DNA of 64,000 nt, from the NCBI GenBank assembly GCA_044892505.1, contig CM097884.1:91264001-91328000 (forward strand). Reading direction: 5' to 3'. The notes beneath the pieces are model-generated. The model had not been told where the DNA came from. It did not search any database and worked only from the letters and a program-made list of their open reading frames with translations. This DNA is from Schmidtea nova. Its lineage: Eukaryota. The stretch's first letter is position 1, and each line of letters begins with the position of its first letter. This document shows, one piece after another, positions 51,101-64,000 of the stretch. Position numbers and translations under genes: made by a program.

Positions 51101-51218
51101 CAAATGTTAATAAAATCGTTATTACATTTGAGACTTTGAAAAAGATTCAACTTAACATCATTATGAATGGATGCTTTTCTTCTACAGTCTTGAAAACTAC
51201 AACTTTACCTCCTGTGGG
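1..51218 (+). CDS. Giant 5'-partial coding segment (apparently one exon) of a repetitive extracellular adhesive/mucin-like protein
   Basis: Frame 1 is open from base 1 (cca cat cat tat gtg = PHHYV) to the N gap at 51219, giving 17,072 complete codons. The track's M at 13 is an internal GTG. No signal peptide or start is in the window, and I saw no intron-like interruption. Confidence 0.9.
48070..51174 (+). repeat. Six diverged in-frame copies of the array domain (Cys...GC)
   Basis: Cys-to-Cys spans: 48070-48501 (chimeric), 48628-49092, 49162-49596, 49684-50130, 50203-50652, 50725-51174, i.e. 144-155 aa. Each ends in a hydrophobic strand plus GC (LNIQGC, LLVNGC, ATMKGC, VNVKGC, INFKGC, IIMNGC) and is followed by an S/T/P-rich linker. 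Confidence 0.88.
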
Positions 51219-51885
51219 NNNNNNNNNNNNNNNNNNNNNNNNNNNNNNNNNNNNNNNNNNNNNNNNNNNNNNNNNNNNNNNNNNNNNNNNNNNNNNNNNN
51301 NNNNNNNNNNNNNNNNNNNNNNNNNNNNNNNNNNNNNNNNNNNNNNNNNNNNNNNNNNNNNNNNNNNNNNNNNNNNNNNNNNNNNNNNNNNNNNNNNNNN
51401 NNNNNNNNNNNNNNNNNNNNNNNNNNNNNNNNNNNNNNNNNNNNNNNNNNNNNNNNNNNNNNNNNNNNNNNNNNNNNNNNNNNNNNNNNNNNNNNNNNNN
51501 NNNNNNNNNNNNNNNNNNNNNNNNNNNNNNNNNNNNNNNNNNNNNNNNNNNNNNNNNNNNNNNNNNNNNNNNNNNNNNNNNNNNNNNNNNNNNNNNNNNN
51601 NNNNNNNNNNNNNNNNNNNNNNNNNNNNNNNNNNNNNNNNNNNNNNNNNNNNNNNNNNNNNNNNNNNNNNNNNNNNNNNNNNNNNNNNNNNNNNNNNNNN
51701 NNNNNNNNNNNNNNNNNNNNNNNNNNNNNNNNNNNNNNNNNNNNNNNNNNNNNNNNNNNNNNNNNNNNNNNNNNNNNNNNNNNNNNNNNNNNNNNNNNNN
51801 NNNNNNNNNNNNNNNNNNNNNNNNNNNNNNNNNNNNNNNNNNNNNNNNNNNNNNNNNNNNNNNNNNNNNNNNNNNNNNNNNNNNN
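51219..51885. other. Assembly gap (667 N) inside the giant gene
   Basis: Run of N. Frame continuity across it cannot be verified. Confidence 0.99.
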
Positions 51886-54233
51886 AACAAATACTATTCA
51901 CATGGCCAAATCATCCAAGAAAAATTAGAGTGTGACTCCAAGTAGAAAAATATAATTTTAATTACGTTGAGAGTGTTAATAATTTTTTCGTAGAATTTGT
52001 TCTGATGGTAGAACAATTCCAATTGTTGTTTGTAATAATAAATGGACAAAATGGCAGAAATGTTCCAAATTTTGTGGAGCAGGTGAAACTTCACGACGAC
52101 AATTTTGCATATTGAATCAATTGATGCGAAGCATTGATAAACAAGACCTAATAAAGAAAATTAATGGAAATTGTTTGAATAAAATCGAAGTGAAGCCATG
52201 TTTTGATCAACCTTGTCAAGGTACCGTTTAAAAAAGTATATTGGAGTATAAATTATATTTTAGAATCATGTAAATTAACCGAATGGTCCGATTGGAGTCC
52301 GTGTGACAACACCAGTTGTAAAGACGAATATCAAACCAGAGTTAGACAACTTATTAATGCTAACAAAAACAGCCTTTGTACAAAAGCATTAATGGAATCT
52401 CGAAGATGCATGAAACCACAATGTTTGTTAATTATGGAATTTTTCGTTATAGTTTAATTAACCGAATTAGGTCCATGTGCGGAAAATGCCGTCCTACACG
52501 AGTGCGCCAATATCTTGTGTCCAACGTCATGCAGCCATATGAATCCACGTGTAAGATGCGTCTCCAGCACTAATAACTGTATCAAAGCTTGCGTTTGCAA
52601 ATTGGGTTATCTTTACCAAAATGGAAAATGTGTTCGCAGATCTCAGTGCCTGTGCTTGGCACCTAATTTTAACACGATAATGCTTTCTAAATCATCTTCA
52701 ACTACTGATAGTCAAAAAGCGACAATGGTTCAATTTTTTAATCTGTAATTCTAATTTTATTTTATTTTTATTAGACCTATCCCGGACAAAGCCAAACAAG
52801 CAATTCCGAAAGTCCCGGAGATTCAAATAAATCCAGCTCAACATCGTCATCATCCACGACAACTAAGTTGTCGAATGCTATAATCACAGAACTTTCAAAA
52901 GAAGATCTTGATAAAATAAAACATAATAAGCAATTTACTCCACCGTGGAGACCCGGTTATACAAATCCTCCTCTTTATCAGTAATTCAATTTTGAGAAGT
53001 AATATTAAACATTGATCAATGTAGAGCTAGTCCAGCATGGTATGCGGGCGCAACTCCAGCGGGAGCCACAATAAAATTGCCCGACAATTCAGCTACTGAA
53101 CAGAAGATTGACAATGTGCCAACAGGTTCTAAAGCCACCAATCCCGTAAATTCGCCTGAAACATCGCCGACTATTAAATATTTCGTAACGCAAAAATACG
53201 CCCCGTCAAATTCTAATCAGAACCAAAATCAAAATCAAAATGCTGGCGCGTCTGTAACAACTCAAAAGTCTCAACAGTTGACATCCGATTCACTTTTATC
53301 TGGCTCATCAAGTGAGTTTTATTTTGTAACAATCATCCATAATGGCTTTTAAAATTTTCTAGAAAGTCCAAGTTCACAACCTGGACAAGGGTCTCAATCT
53401 CCTGACTCAGCAGCCAGTGGCTCTCTTCAACCGACCGGCTCTGGTAATTTACAAGGCACAGTTACTAGTTTCCCGGGTTTCAGTTTATCGACAATAGATA
53501 AAAGTCACGTAAACGCAAATTCAACTGTGATCTTAGACTGCCAGTCATGGTTTGATGGTTTTTATTATTATTTTCGATTAAAATTTCAAATTCAGTGTCT
53601 GCACAAATGGGCGATTAGTATGTAATGGGCCCCGGTGTATAAGTGAGTTCTGAAGCGAATTTCTGCGATAAATTATTATTGTAAACCTCTAGTTGGCAAT
53701 AATACTTGGTCCGATTGGTCAGCATGGTCCCCTTGCACCGGTATTTGCGGAACTGGAATTAGAAGAAGATTTAGACAGTGTCAAGGAATCAATTGCAAAG
53801 ATACTTCTACCAGTGAAGCTGGATTTACAAGATTTATGGCGACGAATGATGTCCAAGCTGAAGATAAACAATGCATGATTAAAGAATGTTCTTGCGTGTT
53901 TTCTAAAGAATTAATGAAGGTATGTATAACAATTAAAATGATCCTTGAATAAATAGCGATTATTCATTGAAACAGATCCATATTGGAGAAAGTTCTATCA
54001 AAAAATTTAATATCGACTTATCGGCTTTCTGGATCGAAAAAGACAATGTGAAAGGTTTGTCGCACAGCAAAGAATTAGTGAAATCTGGAGATGTCATCAA
54101 AAGTGGAATAACAATTCAAGCCAAATGCAGTCAATGGTAAATTACATTTATTCTGCTGAAATTATTCTTACATGTCAATATGTTTAGCTCTTGCAAGGAC
54201 GGGCAATTCAAGTGCACAACTGAATGTTCGTAA
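51886..54233 (+). CDS. Spliced C-terminal part of the giant protein: 11 exons, 619 aa plus stop
   Basis: Exons 51886-51941, 51994-52220, 52264-52422, 52471-52727, 52775-52980, 53025-53311, 53363-53549, 53596-53642, 53693-53919, 53976-54136, 54188-54233. All 10 introns are GT-AG and 43-56 nt. Exon lengths sum to 1860 nt in one open frame ending ...CSCKDGQFKCTTECS*. Linkage to the giant exon across the gap is inferred from strand and proximity. Confidence 0.85.
52043..52216 (+). other. Thrombospondin type-1 repeat 1
   Basis: WTKWQKCSKFCGAGETSRRQFC...NCLNKIEVKPCFDQPC fits the WxxWxxCSxxCGxGxxxRxRxC pattern. Confidence 0.88.
52264..52422 (+). other. Thrombospondin type-1 repeat 2 (spondin-like)
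   Basis: CKLTEWSDWSPCDNTSCKDEYQTRVR...CTKALMESRRCMKPQC. Confidence 0.88.
52476..52649 (+). other. TIL (trypsin inhibitor-like cysteine-rich) domain
   Basis: CAENAVLHECANILCPTSCSHMNPRVRCVSSTNNCIKACVCKLGYLYQNGKCVRRSQC has the 10-Cys TIL spacing. Confidence 0.9.
53707..53889 (+). other. Thrombospondin type-1 repeat 3
   Basis: WSDWSAWSPCTGICGTGIRRRFRQCQGINC...EDKQCMIKEC. This frame differs from the one the ORF track reports at 53693. Confidence 0.92.
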
Positions 54234-54277: not shown

Positions 54278-54660
54278 TCTTCTGCTTAAATTGTGATTTT
54301 TTAAATTTTCTTTTCATTGATAAAATTAAAAAAATTATTATATCTTTCGGATATTCTGAGCCGTATTAAAACTGTCGACAATAATTGCAATGAAAAATCG
54401 TAATAAACATCAATCAGTACTATATTTTATGTATTTTTTTATTATTTGATTAAATGAAGTAACTGATTTGTTCCAAGAAATGTCGATGTGAAATTTTAAT
54501 TATGTATTAACCAAAAATAATTTTACAAATTGAAAAGGATAAGATTACACCAGGGTGAATAAATCCAATATCATGCATATTTGTCACTTCAATAAAACAA
54601 AAAATTCAAAAATTGGGGATTTGAGTTTTAATGAAAAATCTTTGAATTTTTTTTTAATAT

Positions 54661-54810
54661 NNNNNNNNNNNNNNNNNNNNNNNNNNNNNNNNNNNNNNNN
54701 NNNNNNNNNNNNNNNNNNNNNNNNNNNNNNNNNNNNNNNNNNNNNNNNNNNNNNNNNNNNNNNNNNNNNNNNNNNNNNNNNNNNNNNNNNNNNNNNNNNN
54801 NNNNNNNNNN
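54661..54810. other. Assembly gap (150 N)
   Basis: Run of N. Confidence 0.99.
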
Positions 54811-56971: not shown

Positions 56972-57667
56972 TTATAAGAATGATTTTTTCCTGGCTTTCA
57001 TGTCTGCAAATTTTTCTATTGCTGCCTCCAAATTTAGGTTTGCTACAACATTATTTTCAATTGAAATAATGGCCAAATTATTCAACCTATCTTCCGTCAT
57101 AGTAGATCGCAAATAAGTTTTTATTAGTTTTAATTTACTAAAACTTCTTTCACCACTCGCAACACTAACAGGAATTGTTACGAGGATTCGTAAAGCCACC
57201 CACAGATTTGGTACTGTACTTTTCAAATTATTGGAAAAGCTTCGATTATTTTCATCTCTTGGATAAATATGTTGTTGATTACACCTTTCTTCGTTTCCAT
57301 ATAAGTCAGATACAACTATATGGCCAATTTCCGTATGTTTTAAATTTTGTGGCCATAGCCCAATATCATTACAATTTAAAATATTTTCAAATACATAATG
57401 AGTTGAATCACTAGTAACAATTATTTCAGTTCCGTGAGAAGACATTAAATTATCCTCATTGATAATATTACAAGTTTCAGCTTCTGATGAAACATTACCT
57501 ATATCGTCCTCTGAGCTTGAAGATGTTGACTCGAAATGTTGATAATCATCGGCTACTGATTTACTGGATTTAAAATATTTCAATATTTTATCGTGCTTAT
57601 CAGCTTGTTGTTGTCTATTTATTTTTCGTTTCCGATATTCATACCCACTCAATTTTTTTGGTGGCAT
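56972..57667 (-). CDS. Truncated hAT transposase: N-terminus fused in frame to the C-terminal dimerisation domain (231 aa)
   Basis: Basic N-terminus MPPKKLSGYEYRKRK. C-terminus PNLWVALRILVTIPVSVASGERSFSKLKLIKTYLRSTMTEDRLNNLAIISIE is the hAT dimerisation signature. The catalytic core is absent. Confidence 0.88.
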   Translation of the reverse strand: MPPKKLSGYEYRKRKINRQQQADKHDKILKYFKSSKSVADDYQHFESTSSSSEDDIGNVSSEAETCNIINEDNLMSSHGTEIIVTSDSTHYVFENILNCNDIGLWPQNLKHTEIGHIVVSDLYGNEERCNQQHIYPRDENNRSFSNNLKSTVPNLWVALRILVTIPVSVASGERSFSKLKLIKTYLRSTMTEDRLNNLAIISIENNVVANLNLEAAIEKFADMKARKKSFL

Positions 57668-58972: not shown

Positions 58973-60478
58973 ATAATTTGTCTTTTAATTTCTTTTTAAT
59001 CAATTTTTTTCAAATTCCTATAGTAATTACTAATAGGAATTGATTTTTGAATTAAGTATTTTATAATTATTTATTTTAATTTTCATGGCCAATTTTCCAA
59101 TCAACCAAAGTCGTAAAAATAACAGAAATAATAAAATGGGAGGGGGATCATCCTGTGTCCGAAAGGATGCCCACGACAACACAAGTGTTTGCAATAATTA
59201 TAACATCAATAGAATAATAACAATGATAAAAATGACCATAATAAAAATGAAAATAACGACAAGATATAACTTTTACAAATACTATTTCATTATTTCATGC
59301 AATAGATTAATTTAACGAATCAATGAGATTTGTCTTACTGTTACTATTATTTAATAAGAATCTTTTCAAGATATTGGCTTATGCAATGTTGATTTTCTAA
59401 AATATTTCAACTTTTTAAAACCAGTTTTTTAACTCAATTTATTTTAAATTATTTTTACAAACAAGCTTTTGCTAAGTTTCACCATTTACCACTGTCTCAT
59501 TTAAGTGATTATATGAAGTAGACTTACAATTTTAAAATACGTGGGATTCTTTGAATTTTCAAAATAAAATCAACAAGTTTTAACCCAGTTGAAATTTGTT
59601 CTAAAGAATAAATCTCAATAAAATTTTGTTAAAAAATTACTTTCCTTGTAATAAAAGTCCCACCATCAGCTACATATCACAGTCACCAAAATCTGTAAAG
59701 TAAAATTTATTGGCTTTCCAAAACGCTTGAGATCCTATTGCAAAGTAAATTAATAAAGAAAATAGGAAAGTCTTATTTATTGTGTTATGGTTTTTTTATT
59801 GTTGTATTTGGGTTGTTATTATTCTGGTTAAGATCGGTTTACTGACCTGACTCCTCGTACTCTTTAATTATCGAAATCAATGAACCCAACACAGAACAAT
59901 CTTTTTATTCACGATCAACACAAATTACAATCTTTGTGATGGGACTGTGGATGGGTTTAGAAATTATACGTAGGTAAATTGATAGTTGCTAGGGATTTTC
60001 CGTCCACAGCCCCACATAACTTTATCGTCGACACGCGTATGCCCTTGACTATTCCCTACTAGCCAAGTTGGTACTGCATACGGTGGTAGAAAAATGATGG
60101 GCAGGTGAGCTCCGTTACCAGAACTACTCCCCATTTATCTTCCCTCGGGTCCTTGCTGCCGATAGAAGGTCTTACGCATTTACATTCTACTTATATTCAT
60201 CCCCTTATTCATTTAGGATCTCTATGCTCTTATTATCTAAAAATCACCTTCTCATGACTTTCGTATTTCACTTTCAGTAGTCGGTATTTATCTGGTACTC
60301 AATTGATCTCTCCGCAGGGTCGGTCATTGGTGAAAATTTCAGGAGGAAACTGGATACTTCCACATTTTTCTTATGTTGTTTAATTTACTTAGAAATTTTA
60401 CACGATGAGAGACAATATTAAACCAATAAACACTGTAATTTAAGAAAATATTTTATTTTATATAGTAACATTTACACG

Positions 60479-61066
60479 CTATTCCATAAAATCTAAACTA
60501 ATTTCATGGATCAATTCTAGTTCCGTTAGGGTATTCAATTTATAAATCTGTACATTCATTTGTCTGGCGAACTCCCGACGACGACGGCGTTGCCGCGATC
60601 CCAGTCGGTTCCTTTGTTGTTGTTGACCGACTACGGGTGCGAGAACGGTTGATTTCGGTTGACCACTGTGAGGTGTGGGAGAATCTTCCGTTATAAGATT
60701 TGGAGCCATGATAATCCCGTCTTCCGTTCCACACGCGATGTCCTGGTATGTATTCTGAGTCCATCGCTAAGCGGTAATCGGCCGGATTAATGCGCGCAGT
60801 TCGGAATCTATGTAACTCCTTGTTACTGCATTTAAACAGTTGCACAATTCCCTTTGAACTGCGTCGAGCTCCATCTTCGTCTCCGATAACGCTTCCTGCG
60901 TTCGTTCCATTTTTTGTAATTGAATCTTCATCTGCTCTGGAGAAAACCATCTAGATTTTAGCTCTTCGTTCGAAATCGTGATCCGTTTAATCTGTCACTG
61001 TTGATCCCTCATCTTCCGGTCTTGCATTTGGTTCATAATCCTTTTGATGTGCTCGGTAGAATACAT
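60479..61066 (-). pseudogene. 195-codon frame with two premature stops; coiled-coil N-half and Arg-rich C-terminus
   Basis: ATG at 61066, in-frame TGA at 60997-60995 and TAG at 60769-60767. The frame runs into the track ORF 60479..60709. It encodes MKIQLQKMERTQEALSETKMELDAVQRELC and RLGSRQRRRRREF. Confidence 0.5.
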
Positions 61067-61308
61067 TAGATCTGAATATTGTAATGTTTTATTTCACCCG
61101 TAATTATATCAACGACGGTATTTTATTTAAATAAATAGTATAGTTAACGAATGAGATGTACATCATAAATTCTAATATAATTAATTATTAAGATTCCATA
61201 AAGGGATTTAAGCTAATTCATAGAAGTTTTAATTTATTGTAATTAACTACTGATCTAATGACTAAATTGAACACGCTTTCACAAAAAAACACATTTATTA
61301 GATTAAAA

Positions 61309-61833
61309 TCATTCATCGGCCATCTTTCCCCGATAGGAGAATATGGTCCGGATCTGGAGGTTGGTATTGATATCTTTTGGGGAAGATGTGACTTTCTGCA
61401 AGCATGCTTTCTCGGCCTCTCGGAGAGGTCGAATCGCTACATTGAACACGAGTCCCAACTCTTCGAAGGTTGAGGCCGGAATGTATCCCCAGTAGATGGC
61501 AAAATTCGGGAATCCTTTCTCGTCCAACATTAGGACAAACCACTCGGCATGCCATTTTTCGAATTCCTCATCCGGAACGATGGGCCAGTTGGCACAGCCT
61601 CGGTACCACACGTGATGACGTGGGTGATCCCATACAGTGAAGGGGCATGCCGTTTCCAACTTCCTCCTCCAGGCCCATATTTTTTGGTGGACTTGTTGAA
61701 TAATTTCGAACGGAGCGGGCTTTAACGGACTGGCCCGGACTCGGTTCCGCTTAAGAAATCCATTTTTCCAGCCCCACTGGTTCTCGGTTCTGGCTACTCT
61801 CTTTTTCCCGTGTTGTAACTTCCGATTTCTCAT
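61309..61833 (-). CDS. Unidentified Trp/His-rich protein, paralog A (174 aa)
   Basis: ATG-to-TGA intronless ORF. It is 75% identical (102/136, ungapped) to 63316..63792 with many synonymous differences, and AATAAA follows the stop. Confidence 0.85.
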   Translation of the reverse strand: MRNRKLQHGKKRVARTENQWGWKNGFLKRNRVRASPLKPAPFEIIQQVHQKIWAWRRKLETACPFTVWDHPRHHVWYRGCANWPIVPDEEFEKWHAEWFVLMLDEKGFPNFAIYWGYIPASTFEELGLVFNVAIRPLREAEKACLQKVTSSPKDINTNLQIRTIFSYRGKMADE

Positions 61834-61901
61834 TTTTCTAGATGATCATAAATTTATAAAATTTATAATTTTTAAACAGTGGTTGGTTAAATTTAGCACT
61901 A

Positions 61902-61911
61902 TCTCTCATCG
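61902..61911 (-). promoter_or_regulatory. CGATGAGAGA motif upstream of paralog A
   Basis: 68 nt separate the motif from the ATG at 61833, with TATAAA-like runs in between. Confidence 0.55.
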
Positions 61912-62304
61912 CTCGTTTAAATTTATTGGTCTGTTGGGCCAGCCAAATAGAGGGAAAAGTGAAATAAAAGTATAATAATTAAAACAAAAAAGAGAAAAAA
62001 TAAGGTAAAAAGGGGAATAATAAGTTAAAAGAAAAGAGTAATATAGTTAAAATATAGATAAATTAGGAACAAACTATAAATAAAAATAAACGAATTAAAG
62101 ACATTTCTAAATATTAACTGGCCCAGGAGACATCTAAAAACAAATAAAATACAAATATTAATAATTAAAACAAAATAAAAAGTACTTGTTATTGAATAAT
62201 TGTTTTTGAAACCCAGACCACCGAGAAAGAATCCAATCTAAAAAATAAAAATTAATTAGATCAACAAAATAATAATCAAACCCACCATGAAACTGGCCAA
62301 ACCT

Positions 62305-62349
62305 GATTGGTCGGTCTAGACACGACTGATCAGTATAAATACTGATCAG
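62305..62349 (+). promoter_or_regulatory. Pol II-like promoter: reverse CCAAT box, then TATAAATA inside a 10-bp inverted repeat
   Basis: attgg at 62305-62309. ctgatcagta-taaa-tactgatcag at 62326-62349. Confidence 0.4.
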
Positions 62350-63235
62350 ATTTTTCATAAAATCAGACTAAAAATTAGACTTAGACTTTGTTCAGATTGC
62401 GACTTTGTTAGATTCACATTAGATTGTTAGATTGTTCAGACTGAGATCACCACTAAGTTGAGATTAACAAGACTGATTTTCAATAGACGATCACTGTTTA
62501 TACCGATTTTAACCGAACAAATTTTTGGGATTCAATTTAGGTATTTTTGTTATATTTATGCTTATTATTGATATTGTTGTAATCATATGTTATCACATTA
62601 TAATTTATTGATTGTTTATCTCATTATAATTTGTGAATTATCATGTTTGCATTTAAACTATATATTGATCATATTAATTTTGCGCCGACTGGGAGCTTTA
62701 GGTTCCCAAGGTGTCAGTCCGTGGCGTGGTGCTCGAGAGCTCCACACACGGTAAAATAATGAATAACAAAATATGACTTTTTGTGTAGTTGACAGAATTT
62801 GCACATGGGACACCCAACAAACCCGGGGAATTAATTTTCGATCATATTAGCTACAGAAGGGACGATTTTTCGGATAAAGTCTAACGATGTAGGATAGGAA
62901 AGAATTTTTGACTGTGAGGAGGCACAATTTTTCACCCTCACCACAGCACAGTTTCTAAACAAACACCTAATAAACCTGGGAAAATTATGTCGACCGCATT
63001 TGATACGAAAGGGGCGTTTTCCGAGTAAACTAGGAGATACATGATGTAAGAGAATTTCCGGTTTAAGATACCAATGTTTCGATGTCCACGCAGACAAATC
63101 ACCAATTTTCGACTATATTATTGATCATAAATAGATAAATCTAAGCAGACACGAGAGTAATGTATACCGTAACGAGCAACAGTTTTTCTTGATTTCAGTT
63201 AAGGTCTAAGGGAAAGGCAAATAATAAAGGCATCA

Positions 63236-63245
63236 CGATGAGAGA
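63236..63245 (+). promoter_or_regulatory. CGATGAGAGA motif upstream of paralog B
   Basis: 70 nt separate the motif from the ATG at 63316, with TATAAA in between. Confidence 0.55.
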
Positions 63246-63315
63246 TAACATCTAATATAATTAATCATTGATTTAAATTGTTAACTATTATAAAATTCAT
63301 CATCGTTCTAGTACC

Positions 63316-63792
63316 ATGACCAAACACAGATTCGCCATCAAAAAACGACGAGAACGAGCCCGAATCAGACCATTAAAGCCGGCTCCATTTGAGATTTTGC
63401 AACAAATACATCAAAAAATGTGGGCATGGCGCCGAGAGCTTGAAACAGCATGTCCCTTTACAGTATGGGACCACCCACGGCATCACGTGTGGTACCGAGG
63501 CTGCGCTAGCTGGCCGATCATTCCAGACGAGGAATTCGAATCATGGCACGCCGCCTGGTTCGTCCTGATGTTAGATAAACGGGGATTCCCGAGCTGTGTG
63601 ATTTATTGGGGGTTCATTCCAGCCTCCACATTCAAGGAGTTAGGGTTCACTTTCCATACGGCAATACGACCCCTTCGGGAAGCCGAGAGGACCCGTCTCC
63701 AGCAAGCCTCACCCAACTCCACTGGAATCAGCTCTCATCTACAAATCAGATCGATATTTTCGTACCGAGGGAAAATGACCGAAGATGGATAG
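63316..63792 (+). CDS. Unidentified Trp/His-rich protein, paralog B (158 aa)
   Basis: ATG-to-TAG intronless ORF sharing the block LETACPFTVWDHPRHHVWYRGCA with paralog A. AATAAA lies downstream. Confidence 0.85.
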   Translation: MTKHRFAIKKRRERARIRPLKPAPFEILQQIHQKMWAWRRELETACPFTVWDHPRHHVWYRGCASWPIIPDEEFESWHAAWFVLMLDKRGFPSCVIYWGFIPASTFKELGFTFHTAIRPLREAERTRLQQASPNSTGISSHLQIRSIFSYRGKMTEDG

Positions 63793-64000
63793 TTAAATCG
63801 GTGGCCACCTGTTTTAAATTGAATAAATGTTTTAGAGCAATCTGAGTGTTCCATTTTATTAATAGTGTTGCAATATAGATGAGAAACTTATTAATATCCA
63901 GTGTTGTAGATGTTACAGTCAGTAGGAAATTCTTTCACTAGTACAAAATAGTTAAATAAATATTTTGAGTCTCCAATCATTAAATAGCAAAATATTTTTT

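Follow-up and report, generated by a model that had tools for sequence, protein, structure and literature searches.

What are the two short genes that stand head to head near the right end of a 64,000-nt stretch of the Schmidtea nova genome (GenBank assembly GCA_044892505.1, contig CM097884.1, positions 91,264,001 to 91,328,000, forward strand; ‘the window’ below means this whole stretch)? An earlier reading of the letters alone (the original prediction) had described a pair of Trp/His-rich open reading frames (ORFs), here called genes A and B. Comparison of the two copies demonstrated that a whole small gene was duplicated long ago in inverted orientation, with the protein, the putative proximal promoter and the putative 3′ signals all under purifying selection. 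The best explanation of the pair as a whole, to which we give a probability of about 55%, is that A and B are functional, independently transcribed, intronless orphan paralogues encoding a small soluble nuclear protein that would bind nucleic acid.

A head-to-head pair of paralogous genes

Genes A and B (Table 1) are located on opposite strands and point apart, with 1482 bp between their ATG codons. The two proteins were aligned by BLASTP without gaps (105 of 147 residues identical, 71%; 87% positives; E 2e-87). After trimming, a common core was left in which 100 of 134 residues (75%) are identical, in good agreement with the ungapped 136-aa core at 75% identity that had been predicted. The invariant block of the original prediction is present in both proteins: the 23-aa sequence LETACPFTVWDHPRHHVWYRGCA starts at residue 59 of A and at residue 42 of B, and its 69 nt of coding sequence carry 10 silent differences between the copies. 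The basic N-termini and the absence of introns were confirmed as well, and so was the GC content above that of the AT-rich flanks (50% in the ORFs vs 31% in the DNA between them).

At the DNA level, the pair makes an inverted repeat of 436 nt with 72% identity, the sole long repeat between 59.5 and 64 kb; tblastn searches with both proteins found no further copies in the window. We rejected the idea that the inverted repeat forms a hairpin or gives rise to small RNAs, as the arms are just 72% complementary and the genes are transcribed outward.

Coding status and selection

Over the 147 aligned codons, A and B differ at 31 first, 19 second and 79 third codon positions. The Nei–Gojobori method gave 0.159 for the proportion of non-synonymous differences (pN) and 0.767 for the proportion of synonymous differences (pS), with pN/pS ∼0.2. 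The pS value is above the Jukes–Cantor limit, so that silent sites are saturated between the copies, with a divergence of more than one substitution per silent site. In the bootstrap replicates in which the synonymous rate (dS) was computable, the ratio of non-synonymous to synonymous rates (dN/dS) was 0.03–0.14. Of the fourfold-degenerate sites common to A and B, 26 out of 42 differ, and 52 of the 105 identical residues are encoded by different codons. Every synonymous pair that the original prediction had named was found: cca/ccg (four times), ttc/ttt (four), gac/gat (three), tgc/tgt (two), agg/cgc and ctt/ttg (one each).

Thus, the proposed purifying selection is clearly visible in the distribution of differences over codon positions and in the pN and pS values, and the proposal of a real protein family gains support from it. 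With dN/dS at most 0.14 where computable, and not near 1, the coding claim stands; the signature of protein-coding sequence under strong purifying selection is unambiguous. The duplication is evidently ancient, both copies having been kept until silent sites became saturated.

Conservation between the proteins peaks in the first half (82%) and drops in a Ser/Thr/Pro-rich linker, after which a C-terminal tail, LQIR-IFSYRGKM, is conserved again. Since the two other reading frames carry stops (from two to six) and are 37–38% identical, about half as conserved, the ORFs in alternative frames (80 aa within A and 79 aa within B) are regarded as by-products; with stops in the first half, they were rejected as genes.

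Conserved segments upstream and downstream

Homology between A and B continues upstream of the ORFs. With the two ATG codons aligned, it covers ∼78 bp and starts with an exact 12-mer, CGATGAGAGATA. The score of the local alignment was 37, while 1000 shuffled pairs had a mean score of 18.5 and a maximum of 34; none of them reached 37.

On the downstream side, the similarity is weak as a whole alignment (81 of 1000 shuffles reached its score). The three motifs that the original prediction had reported as common to the 3′ flanks, TTTTAA, AATAAATGT and GTGTTC, do occur in both of them and are equally spaced in A and B (9–10 nt and 24–25 nt). The arrangement of AATAAATGT followed by GTGTTC can be read as a poly(A) signal with a GU-rich downstream element, as is general for eukaryotic 3′ ends.

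Because these flanks outlasted the saturation of silent sites, they are likely to be constrained; given this constraint, we infer that A and B would each be a self-contained transcription unit of ∼0.7 kb.

Table 1. Genes A and B, their flanking segments and the spacer (positions are counted from the first letter of the window)
Feature	Position	Strand	Description
Gene A	61309..61833	minus	Intronless ORF including stop, 174 aa; basic, indel-rich N-terminal tail of ∼35 aa, then conserved 134-aa aromatic-rich core
Gene B	63316..63792	plus	Intronless ORF including stop, 158 aa; paralogue of A; shorter basic tail of ∼18 aa, same core
Proximal promoter-like segment of A	61834..61911	minus	From CGATGAGAGATA box to ATG; TATAAA ∼25 nt before ATG; homologous to the B segment
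Proximal promoter-like segment of B	63236..63315	plus	Same CGATGAGAGATA box; TATAAAA before ATG
3′ module of A	61269..61308	minus	TTTTAA, AATAAATGT (poly(A) signal), GTGTTC (GU-rich downstream element)
3′ module of B	63793..63851	plus	TTTTAA, AATAAATGT, GTGTTC; 19 nt further from the stop than in A
AT-rich spacer between the promoters of A and B	61912..63235		1.3 kb, 24–38% GC; sides not symmetrical; tandem at 62810–63057

Two minor features were observed in the spacer. A diverged tandem with a period of ∼153 bp (score 37 vs a shuffle maximum of 31) is located at 62810–63057, in a GC-richer patch (38%), and a perfect palindrome with a 10-bp stem is located at 62326–62349.

The promoter box recurs a third time, as CACGATGAGAGA, at 60401–60440 on the plus strand, where ∼30 nt more resemble the upstream segments of A and B. 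This match is borderline (29–39 of 1000 shuffles reached its score), and no ORF of the family follows it. It could be what is left of a third copy since lost, or a regulatory site that is shared.

Search for relatives

That the proteins belong to no recognized family, as the original prediction had it, holds throughout the searches. No family was matched by A or B in Pfam or in PHROGs at E up to 1. In NCBIfam, A had no match, and B had one row at chance level (E 0.14; 9.6 bits vs a cut-off of 1800). Against PDB, the single-sequence search stayed at chance level (E 0.025, on the basic tail), and so did the profile search, where the only match was a Fur-family metal regulator (E 0.67). No hits came from a word-index search of 5.8 billion clusters or from a full HMMER search in which 1.84 billion representatives were compared with a profile (E up to 0.001), and neither protein was on record in an exact-sequence look-up.

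IMG/VR was empty both for peptide patterns with tblastn and for a degenerate pattern of the invariant block (WDHPRHHVW); peptide patterns and a degenerate DNA pattern of the same block gave no hits in JGI metagenomes and GTDB genomes. Such pattern scans demand exact short matches, and distant relatives would slip through. Full-text literature searches found no paper with peptide words from the invariant region. A confident match to a known family thus did not turn up in any of the searches run. The collections leave out unannotated eukaryotic assemblies, and the lack of relatives does not amount to proof of a narrow distribution.

A and B may accordingly be described as a lineage-restricted (orphan) family, but the lack of relatives is less telling than it seems, since the lineage looks poorly sampled. 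Poor sampling is suggested by two facts: the 983-aa diverged part of the giant gene next to the pair (see below) has no relatives either, and the only trace of this genome in the protein collection was a 743-bp metagenome contig, on which another copy of the local hAT element is located.

Predicted features of the proteins

Both proteins are strongly basic (isoelectric point 9.8–10.1). The first 35 residues hold 11–12 Lys/Arg vs 1–2 Asp/Glu, with a net charge of +10, and indels distinguish the N-terminal tails of A and B, in keeping with a disordered tail. No hydrophobic leader was found in either protein. The common core has eight Trp, ∼10 Phe, two Cys and five His; in B, the Trp residues are at positions 36, 38, 51, 59, 66, 77, 81 and 98. 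The invariant block contains the order Cys-x6-His-x2-His-His-x5-Cys. The original prediction had proposed that this Cys/His cluster could form a metal site or a nucleic-acid-binding pocket, which remains a guess.

AlphaFold2 was run on the full length and on the core only, in each case from an alignment of two sequences. Values of the predicted local distance difference test (39 and 43 in the two runs) characterize the models as too poor for use. Both runs predicted, with low confidence, a long helix that directly precedes the invariant block; the later helices changed position from run to run, and short strands (in the FVL and IYW stretches) were seen in the core-only run alone and are unreliable. 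A Foldseek search of PDB with the better model gave no match below E 8, though with so poor a model the fold comparison is uninformative.

Nature and origin of the pair

We propose the following scenario for functional orphan paralogues. Long ago, an inverted duplication of a ∼0.7-kb unit comprising promoter, ORF and poly(A) module would have produced A and B. The product would be nuclear, small and soluble. A disordered N-terminal tail rich in Lys and Arg may work as a nuclear-localization or nucleic-acid-contacting arm, and a compact Trp/Phe-rich α+β core may bind DNA or RNA, possibly steadied by a metal that the invariant Cys-x6-His-x2-His-His-x5-Cys would hold. Our confidence in the functional part, that is, in a basic-tailed nuclear protein that binds nucleic acid and might have a Cys/His metal site, is low.

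Several points weigh against this explanation. Composition is the whole basis of the nuclear, nucleic-acid and metal roles, and functional residues cannot be picked out by conservation between just two proteins that are 71% identical. The orphan status may just reflect poor sampling of the lineage: the giant host gene next to the pair likewise has no relatives for its diverged C-terminal 983 aa. Finally, the GC content at third codon positions (GC3), 0.52–0.59 in A and B vs 0.29–0.38 in neighbouring exons, suits a foreign origin no less than a host gene.

A broader proposition, which we put forward tentatively and would not bet on, is that A and B represent an undescribed fold or family, a small basic Trp/His-rich module binding nucleic acid or metal. 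The animal lineage to which such a family would be restricted may be under-sampled; otherwise the host would have taken the family over from a virus or mobile element that is itself unsampled and kept it for a long time. If it is truly without relatives, we are dealing with an old, constrained and duplicated animal gene of unknown fold, and A and B would be better candidates for real lineage-specific biology than the majority of orphan ORFs, which tend to be young and under weak constraint. As a handle for finding co-regulated genes, the conserved CGATGAGAGATA box could be of use. Orphan genes are common, and this pair is a well-behaved unknown that points to no mechanism.

Could A and B be part of a large mobile element or a virus-like one, or have been taken from such an element, with selection acting on the element or on domesticated copies? 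The original prediction took such carriage as probable; in the 12 kb scanned and in the viral collections, we found no support for it in the form of hallmark genes, terminal repeats or viral relatives, and we consider it unlikely. The base composition speaks in its favour (GC3 is 0.59 in A and 0.52 in B, compared with 0.29–0.38 in the host exons of the window), as does the compact, intronless build of genes that each have their own TATA box and poly(A) signal. The lack of relatives among predicted cellular proteins would also fit, and so would two neighbours: the adjoining 59.8–61.0 kb, also GC-richer (40–48%), with a family-less frame and the borderline copy of the promoter box, and a remnant of a hAT transposon 3.6 kb away.

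This remnant, however, belongs to a separate multicopy element, another copy of which is present on an unrelated European Nucleotide Archive (ENA) contig, and the DNA between and beyond A and B returns to a host-like 24–31% GC. The window ends 208 bp to the right of gene B. In the neighbourhood scanned, from 51.9 to 64 kb, frames of at least 45 codons include no integrase, polymerase, capsid, reverse transcriptase, ATPase or protease. Neither long terminal repeats nor terminal inverted repeats nor a target-site duplication were detected around the pair (59.5–64 kb, limited by the end of the window), and IMG/VR and PHROGs were empty.

It is less probable still that A and B were inserted independently, as copies of a small ∼0.7-kb unit that is mobile or retro-copied, rather than duplicated in place. 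The homology does stop within ∼80 bp upstream and ∼55 bp downstream of each ORF, the spacer is without symmetry, and a third promoter-like fragment exists at 60401–60440, all of which independent insertions would explain. A short homology is nevertheless what one would expect for duplication in place, because divergence of more than one substitution per silent site makes neutral flanks unalignable. The ends of the units have neither a poly(A) tail nor a target-site duplication nor a terminal repeat; retro-copies would not bring their promoter with them, and two chance insertions 1.5 kb apart are unlikely.

A reading of the ORFs as frames open by chance, or of the inverted repeat as non-coding, has next to no probability: GC-richer DNA does have fewer stops by chance and no homologue of A or B was found, but the excess of third- over second-position differences (79 vs 19), a pN/pS of ∼0.2 at saturated pS, the absence of indels across 147 codons and the broken, half as conserved other frames refute this idea as far as sequence goes.

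Comparison with known systems

Functional orphan paralogues invite comparison with the orphan gene families of animals. Like these, A and B are short, intronless, without a detectable homologue and locally duplicated in a gene-poor, AT-rich stretch. Young orphan families, however, usually evolve fast under weak constraint, whereas A and B are old, their silent sites being saturated, and under strong constraint (71–75% identity, dN/dS at most ∼0.14), and have conserved promoter and 3′ modules.

Histone gene pairs are similar in being head-to-head and intronless, in encoding proteins of 100–170 aa with basic N-terminal tails and in having GC content above the surroundings. The likeness is confined to layout. 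Unlike histone pairs, A and B are paralogous partners with AATAAA 3′ ends and with their own promoters 1.3 kb apart; no histone-fold family of Pfam was matched by A or B.

With CHHC zinc modules (Pfam zf-U11-48K), the pair has in common a basic protein in which a short invariant stretch has Cys, His, His(His) and Cys, in this order, over no more than 18 residues. The likeness consists in residue order only, and membership is not supported: no Pfam model of CHHC or other small zinc fingers matched A or B at E up to 1. Many conserved tryptophans in a basic protein also bring to mind Myb/SANT/MADF proteins, including the accessory proteins of PIF/Harbinger elements. The Trp spacing in B is, however, irregular rather than 18–19 residues, no transposase partner is located nearby, and no Myb or MADF model of Pfam matched A or B. 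Membership in HUH Rep proteins, considered in view of the FT-V-W-D and HH stretch of A and B, was rejected; Pfam gave no Rep family, and, as read from the alignment, A and B have His-His-Val, not His-hydrophobic-His.

Genomic surroundings

The window is AT-rich eukaryotic DNA (∼30% GC), most of which is taken by a giant gene. An open frame extends from position 13 to 51150 on the plus strand and runs on into a run of N. From 13 to ∼48200, ∼83 near-identical tandem units of 570 bp follow one another in one open frame, and ∼5 diverged units come after them. Each unit encodes 190 aa, rich in Lys, Val and Thr, with a Pro/Thr linker and two Cys. Neither the repeat units nor the 983-aa diverged part scored above any Pfam threshold or was matched in the word search. 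The 162-aa antisense ORF present in every 570-bp unit was dismissed as a by-product of the repeat.

Exon-like frames with TSP1 domains (three frames) and TIL domains were found at 52194–52745 (plus strand) and nearby, up to ∼54200. They are probably 3′ exons of the giant gene, which would then be secreted and mucin-like. Together, the TSP1/TIL exons and the giant repeat gene indicate an animal host.

The Pfam scan of the neighbourhood comprised 84 open frames, each 45 codons or longer, with A, B and the frames overlapping them set aside. Besides TSP1 and TIL, it detected one fragment of a hAT C-terminal dimerization domain and one sub-threshold COG4_m match. The hAT remnant, at 56975–57667 on the minus strand, has the C-terminal dimerization domain only (Pfam E 2.4e-13); this copy is truncated, the remainder of its 231-aa ORF being unrelated sequence. 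Another copy, 99.6% identical over 267 bp, is located on the ENA metagenome contig ERZ2271605 (743 bp). This contig was the one hit at 100% identity; named relatives of the local element come from insects, crustaceans, Hydra, a frog and plants.

Closer to the pair, a frame of 171 codons was observed on the minus strand at 60482–60994. It has 44–46% GC, one in-frame stop and a coding-like periodicity, with GC content at first codon positions (GC1) above that at second positions (GC2), and it combines a coiled-coil-like start with an Arg-rich C-terminal part. Its two pieces, searched apart, matched no Pfam or NCBIfam family and no IMG/VR relative. A 136-aa ORF overlapping this frame (60540–60950, minus strand) looks spurious, with GC2 above GC1.

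Scanning the entire window for Rfam families and tRNAs gave no hits. The window contains 817 N in all, in runs at ∼51200–51880 and ∼54660–54800, the first being the one into which the frame of the giant gene continues.

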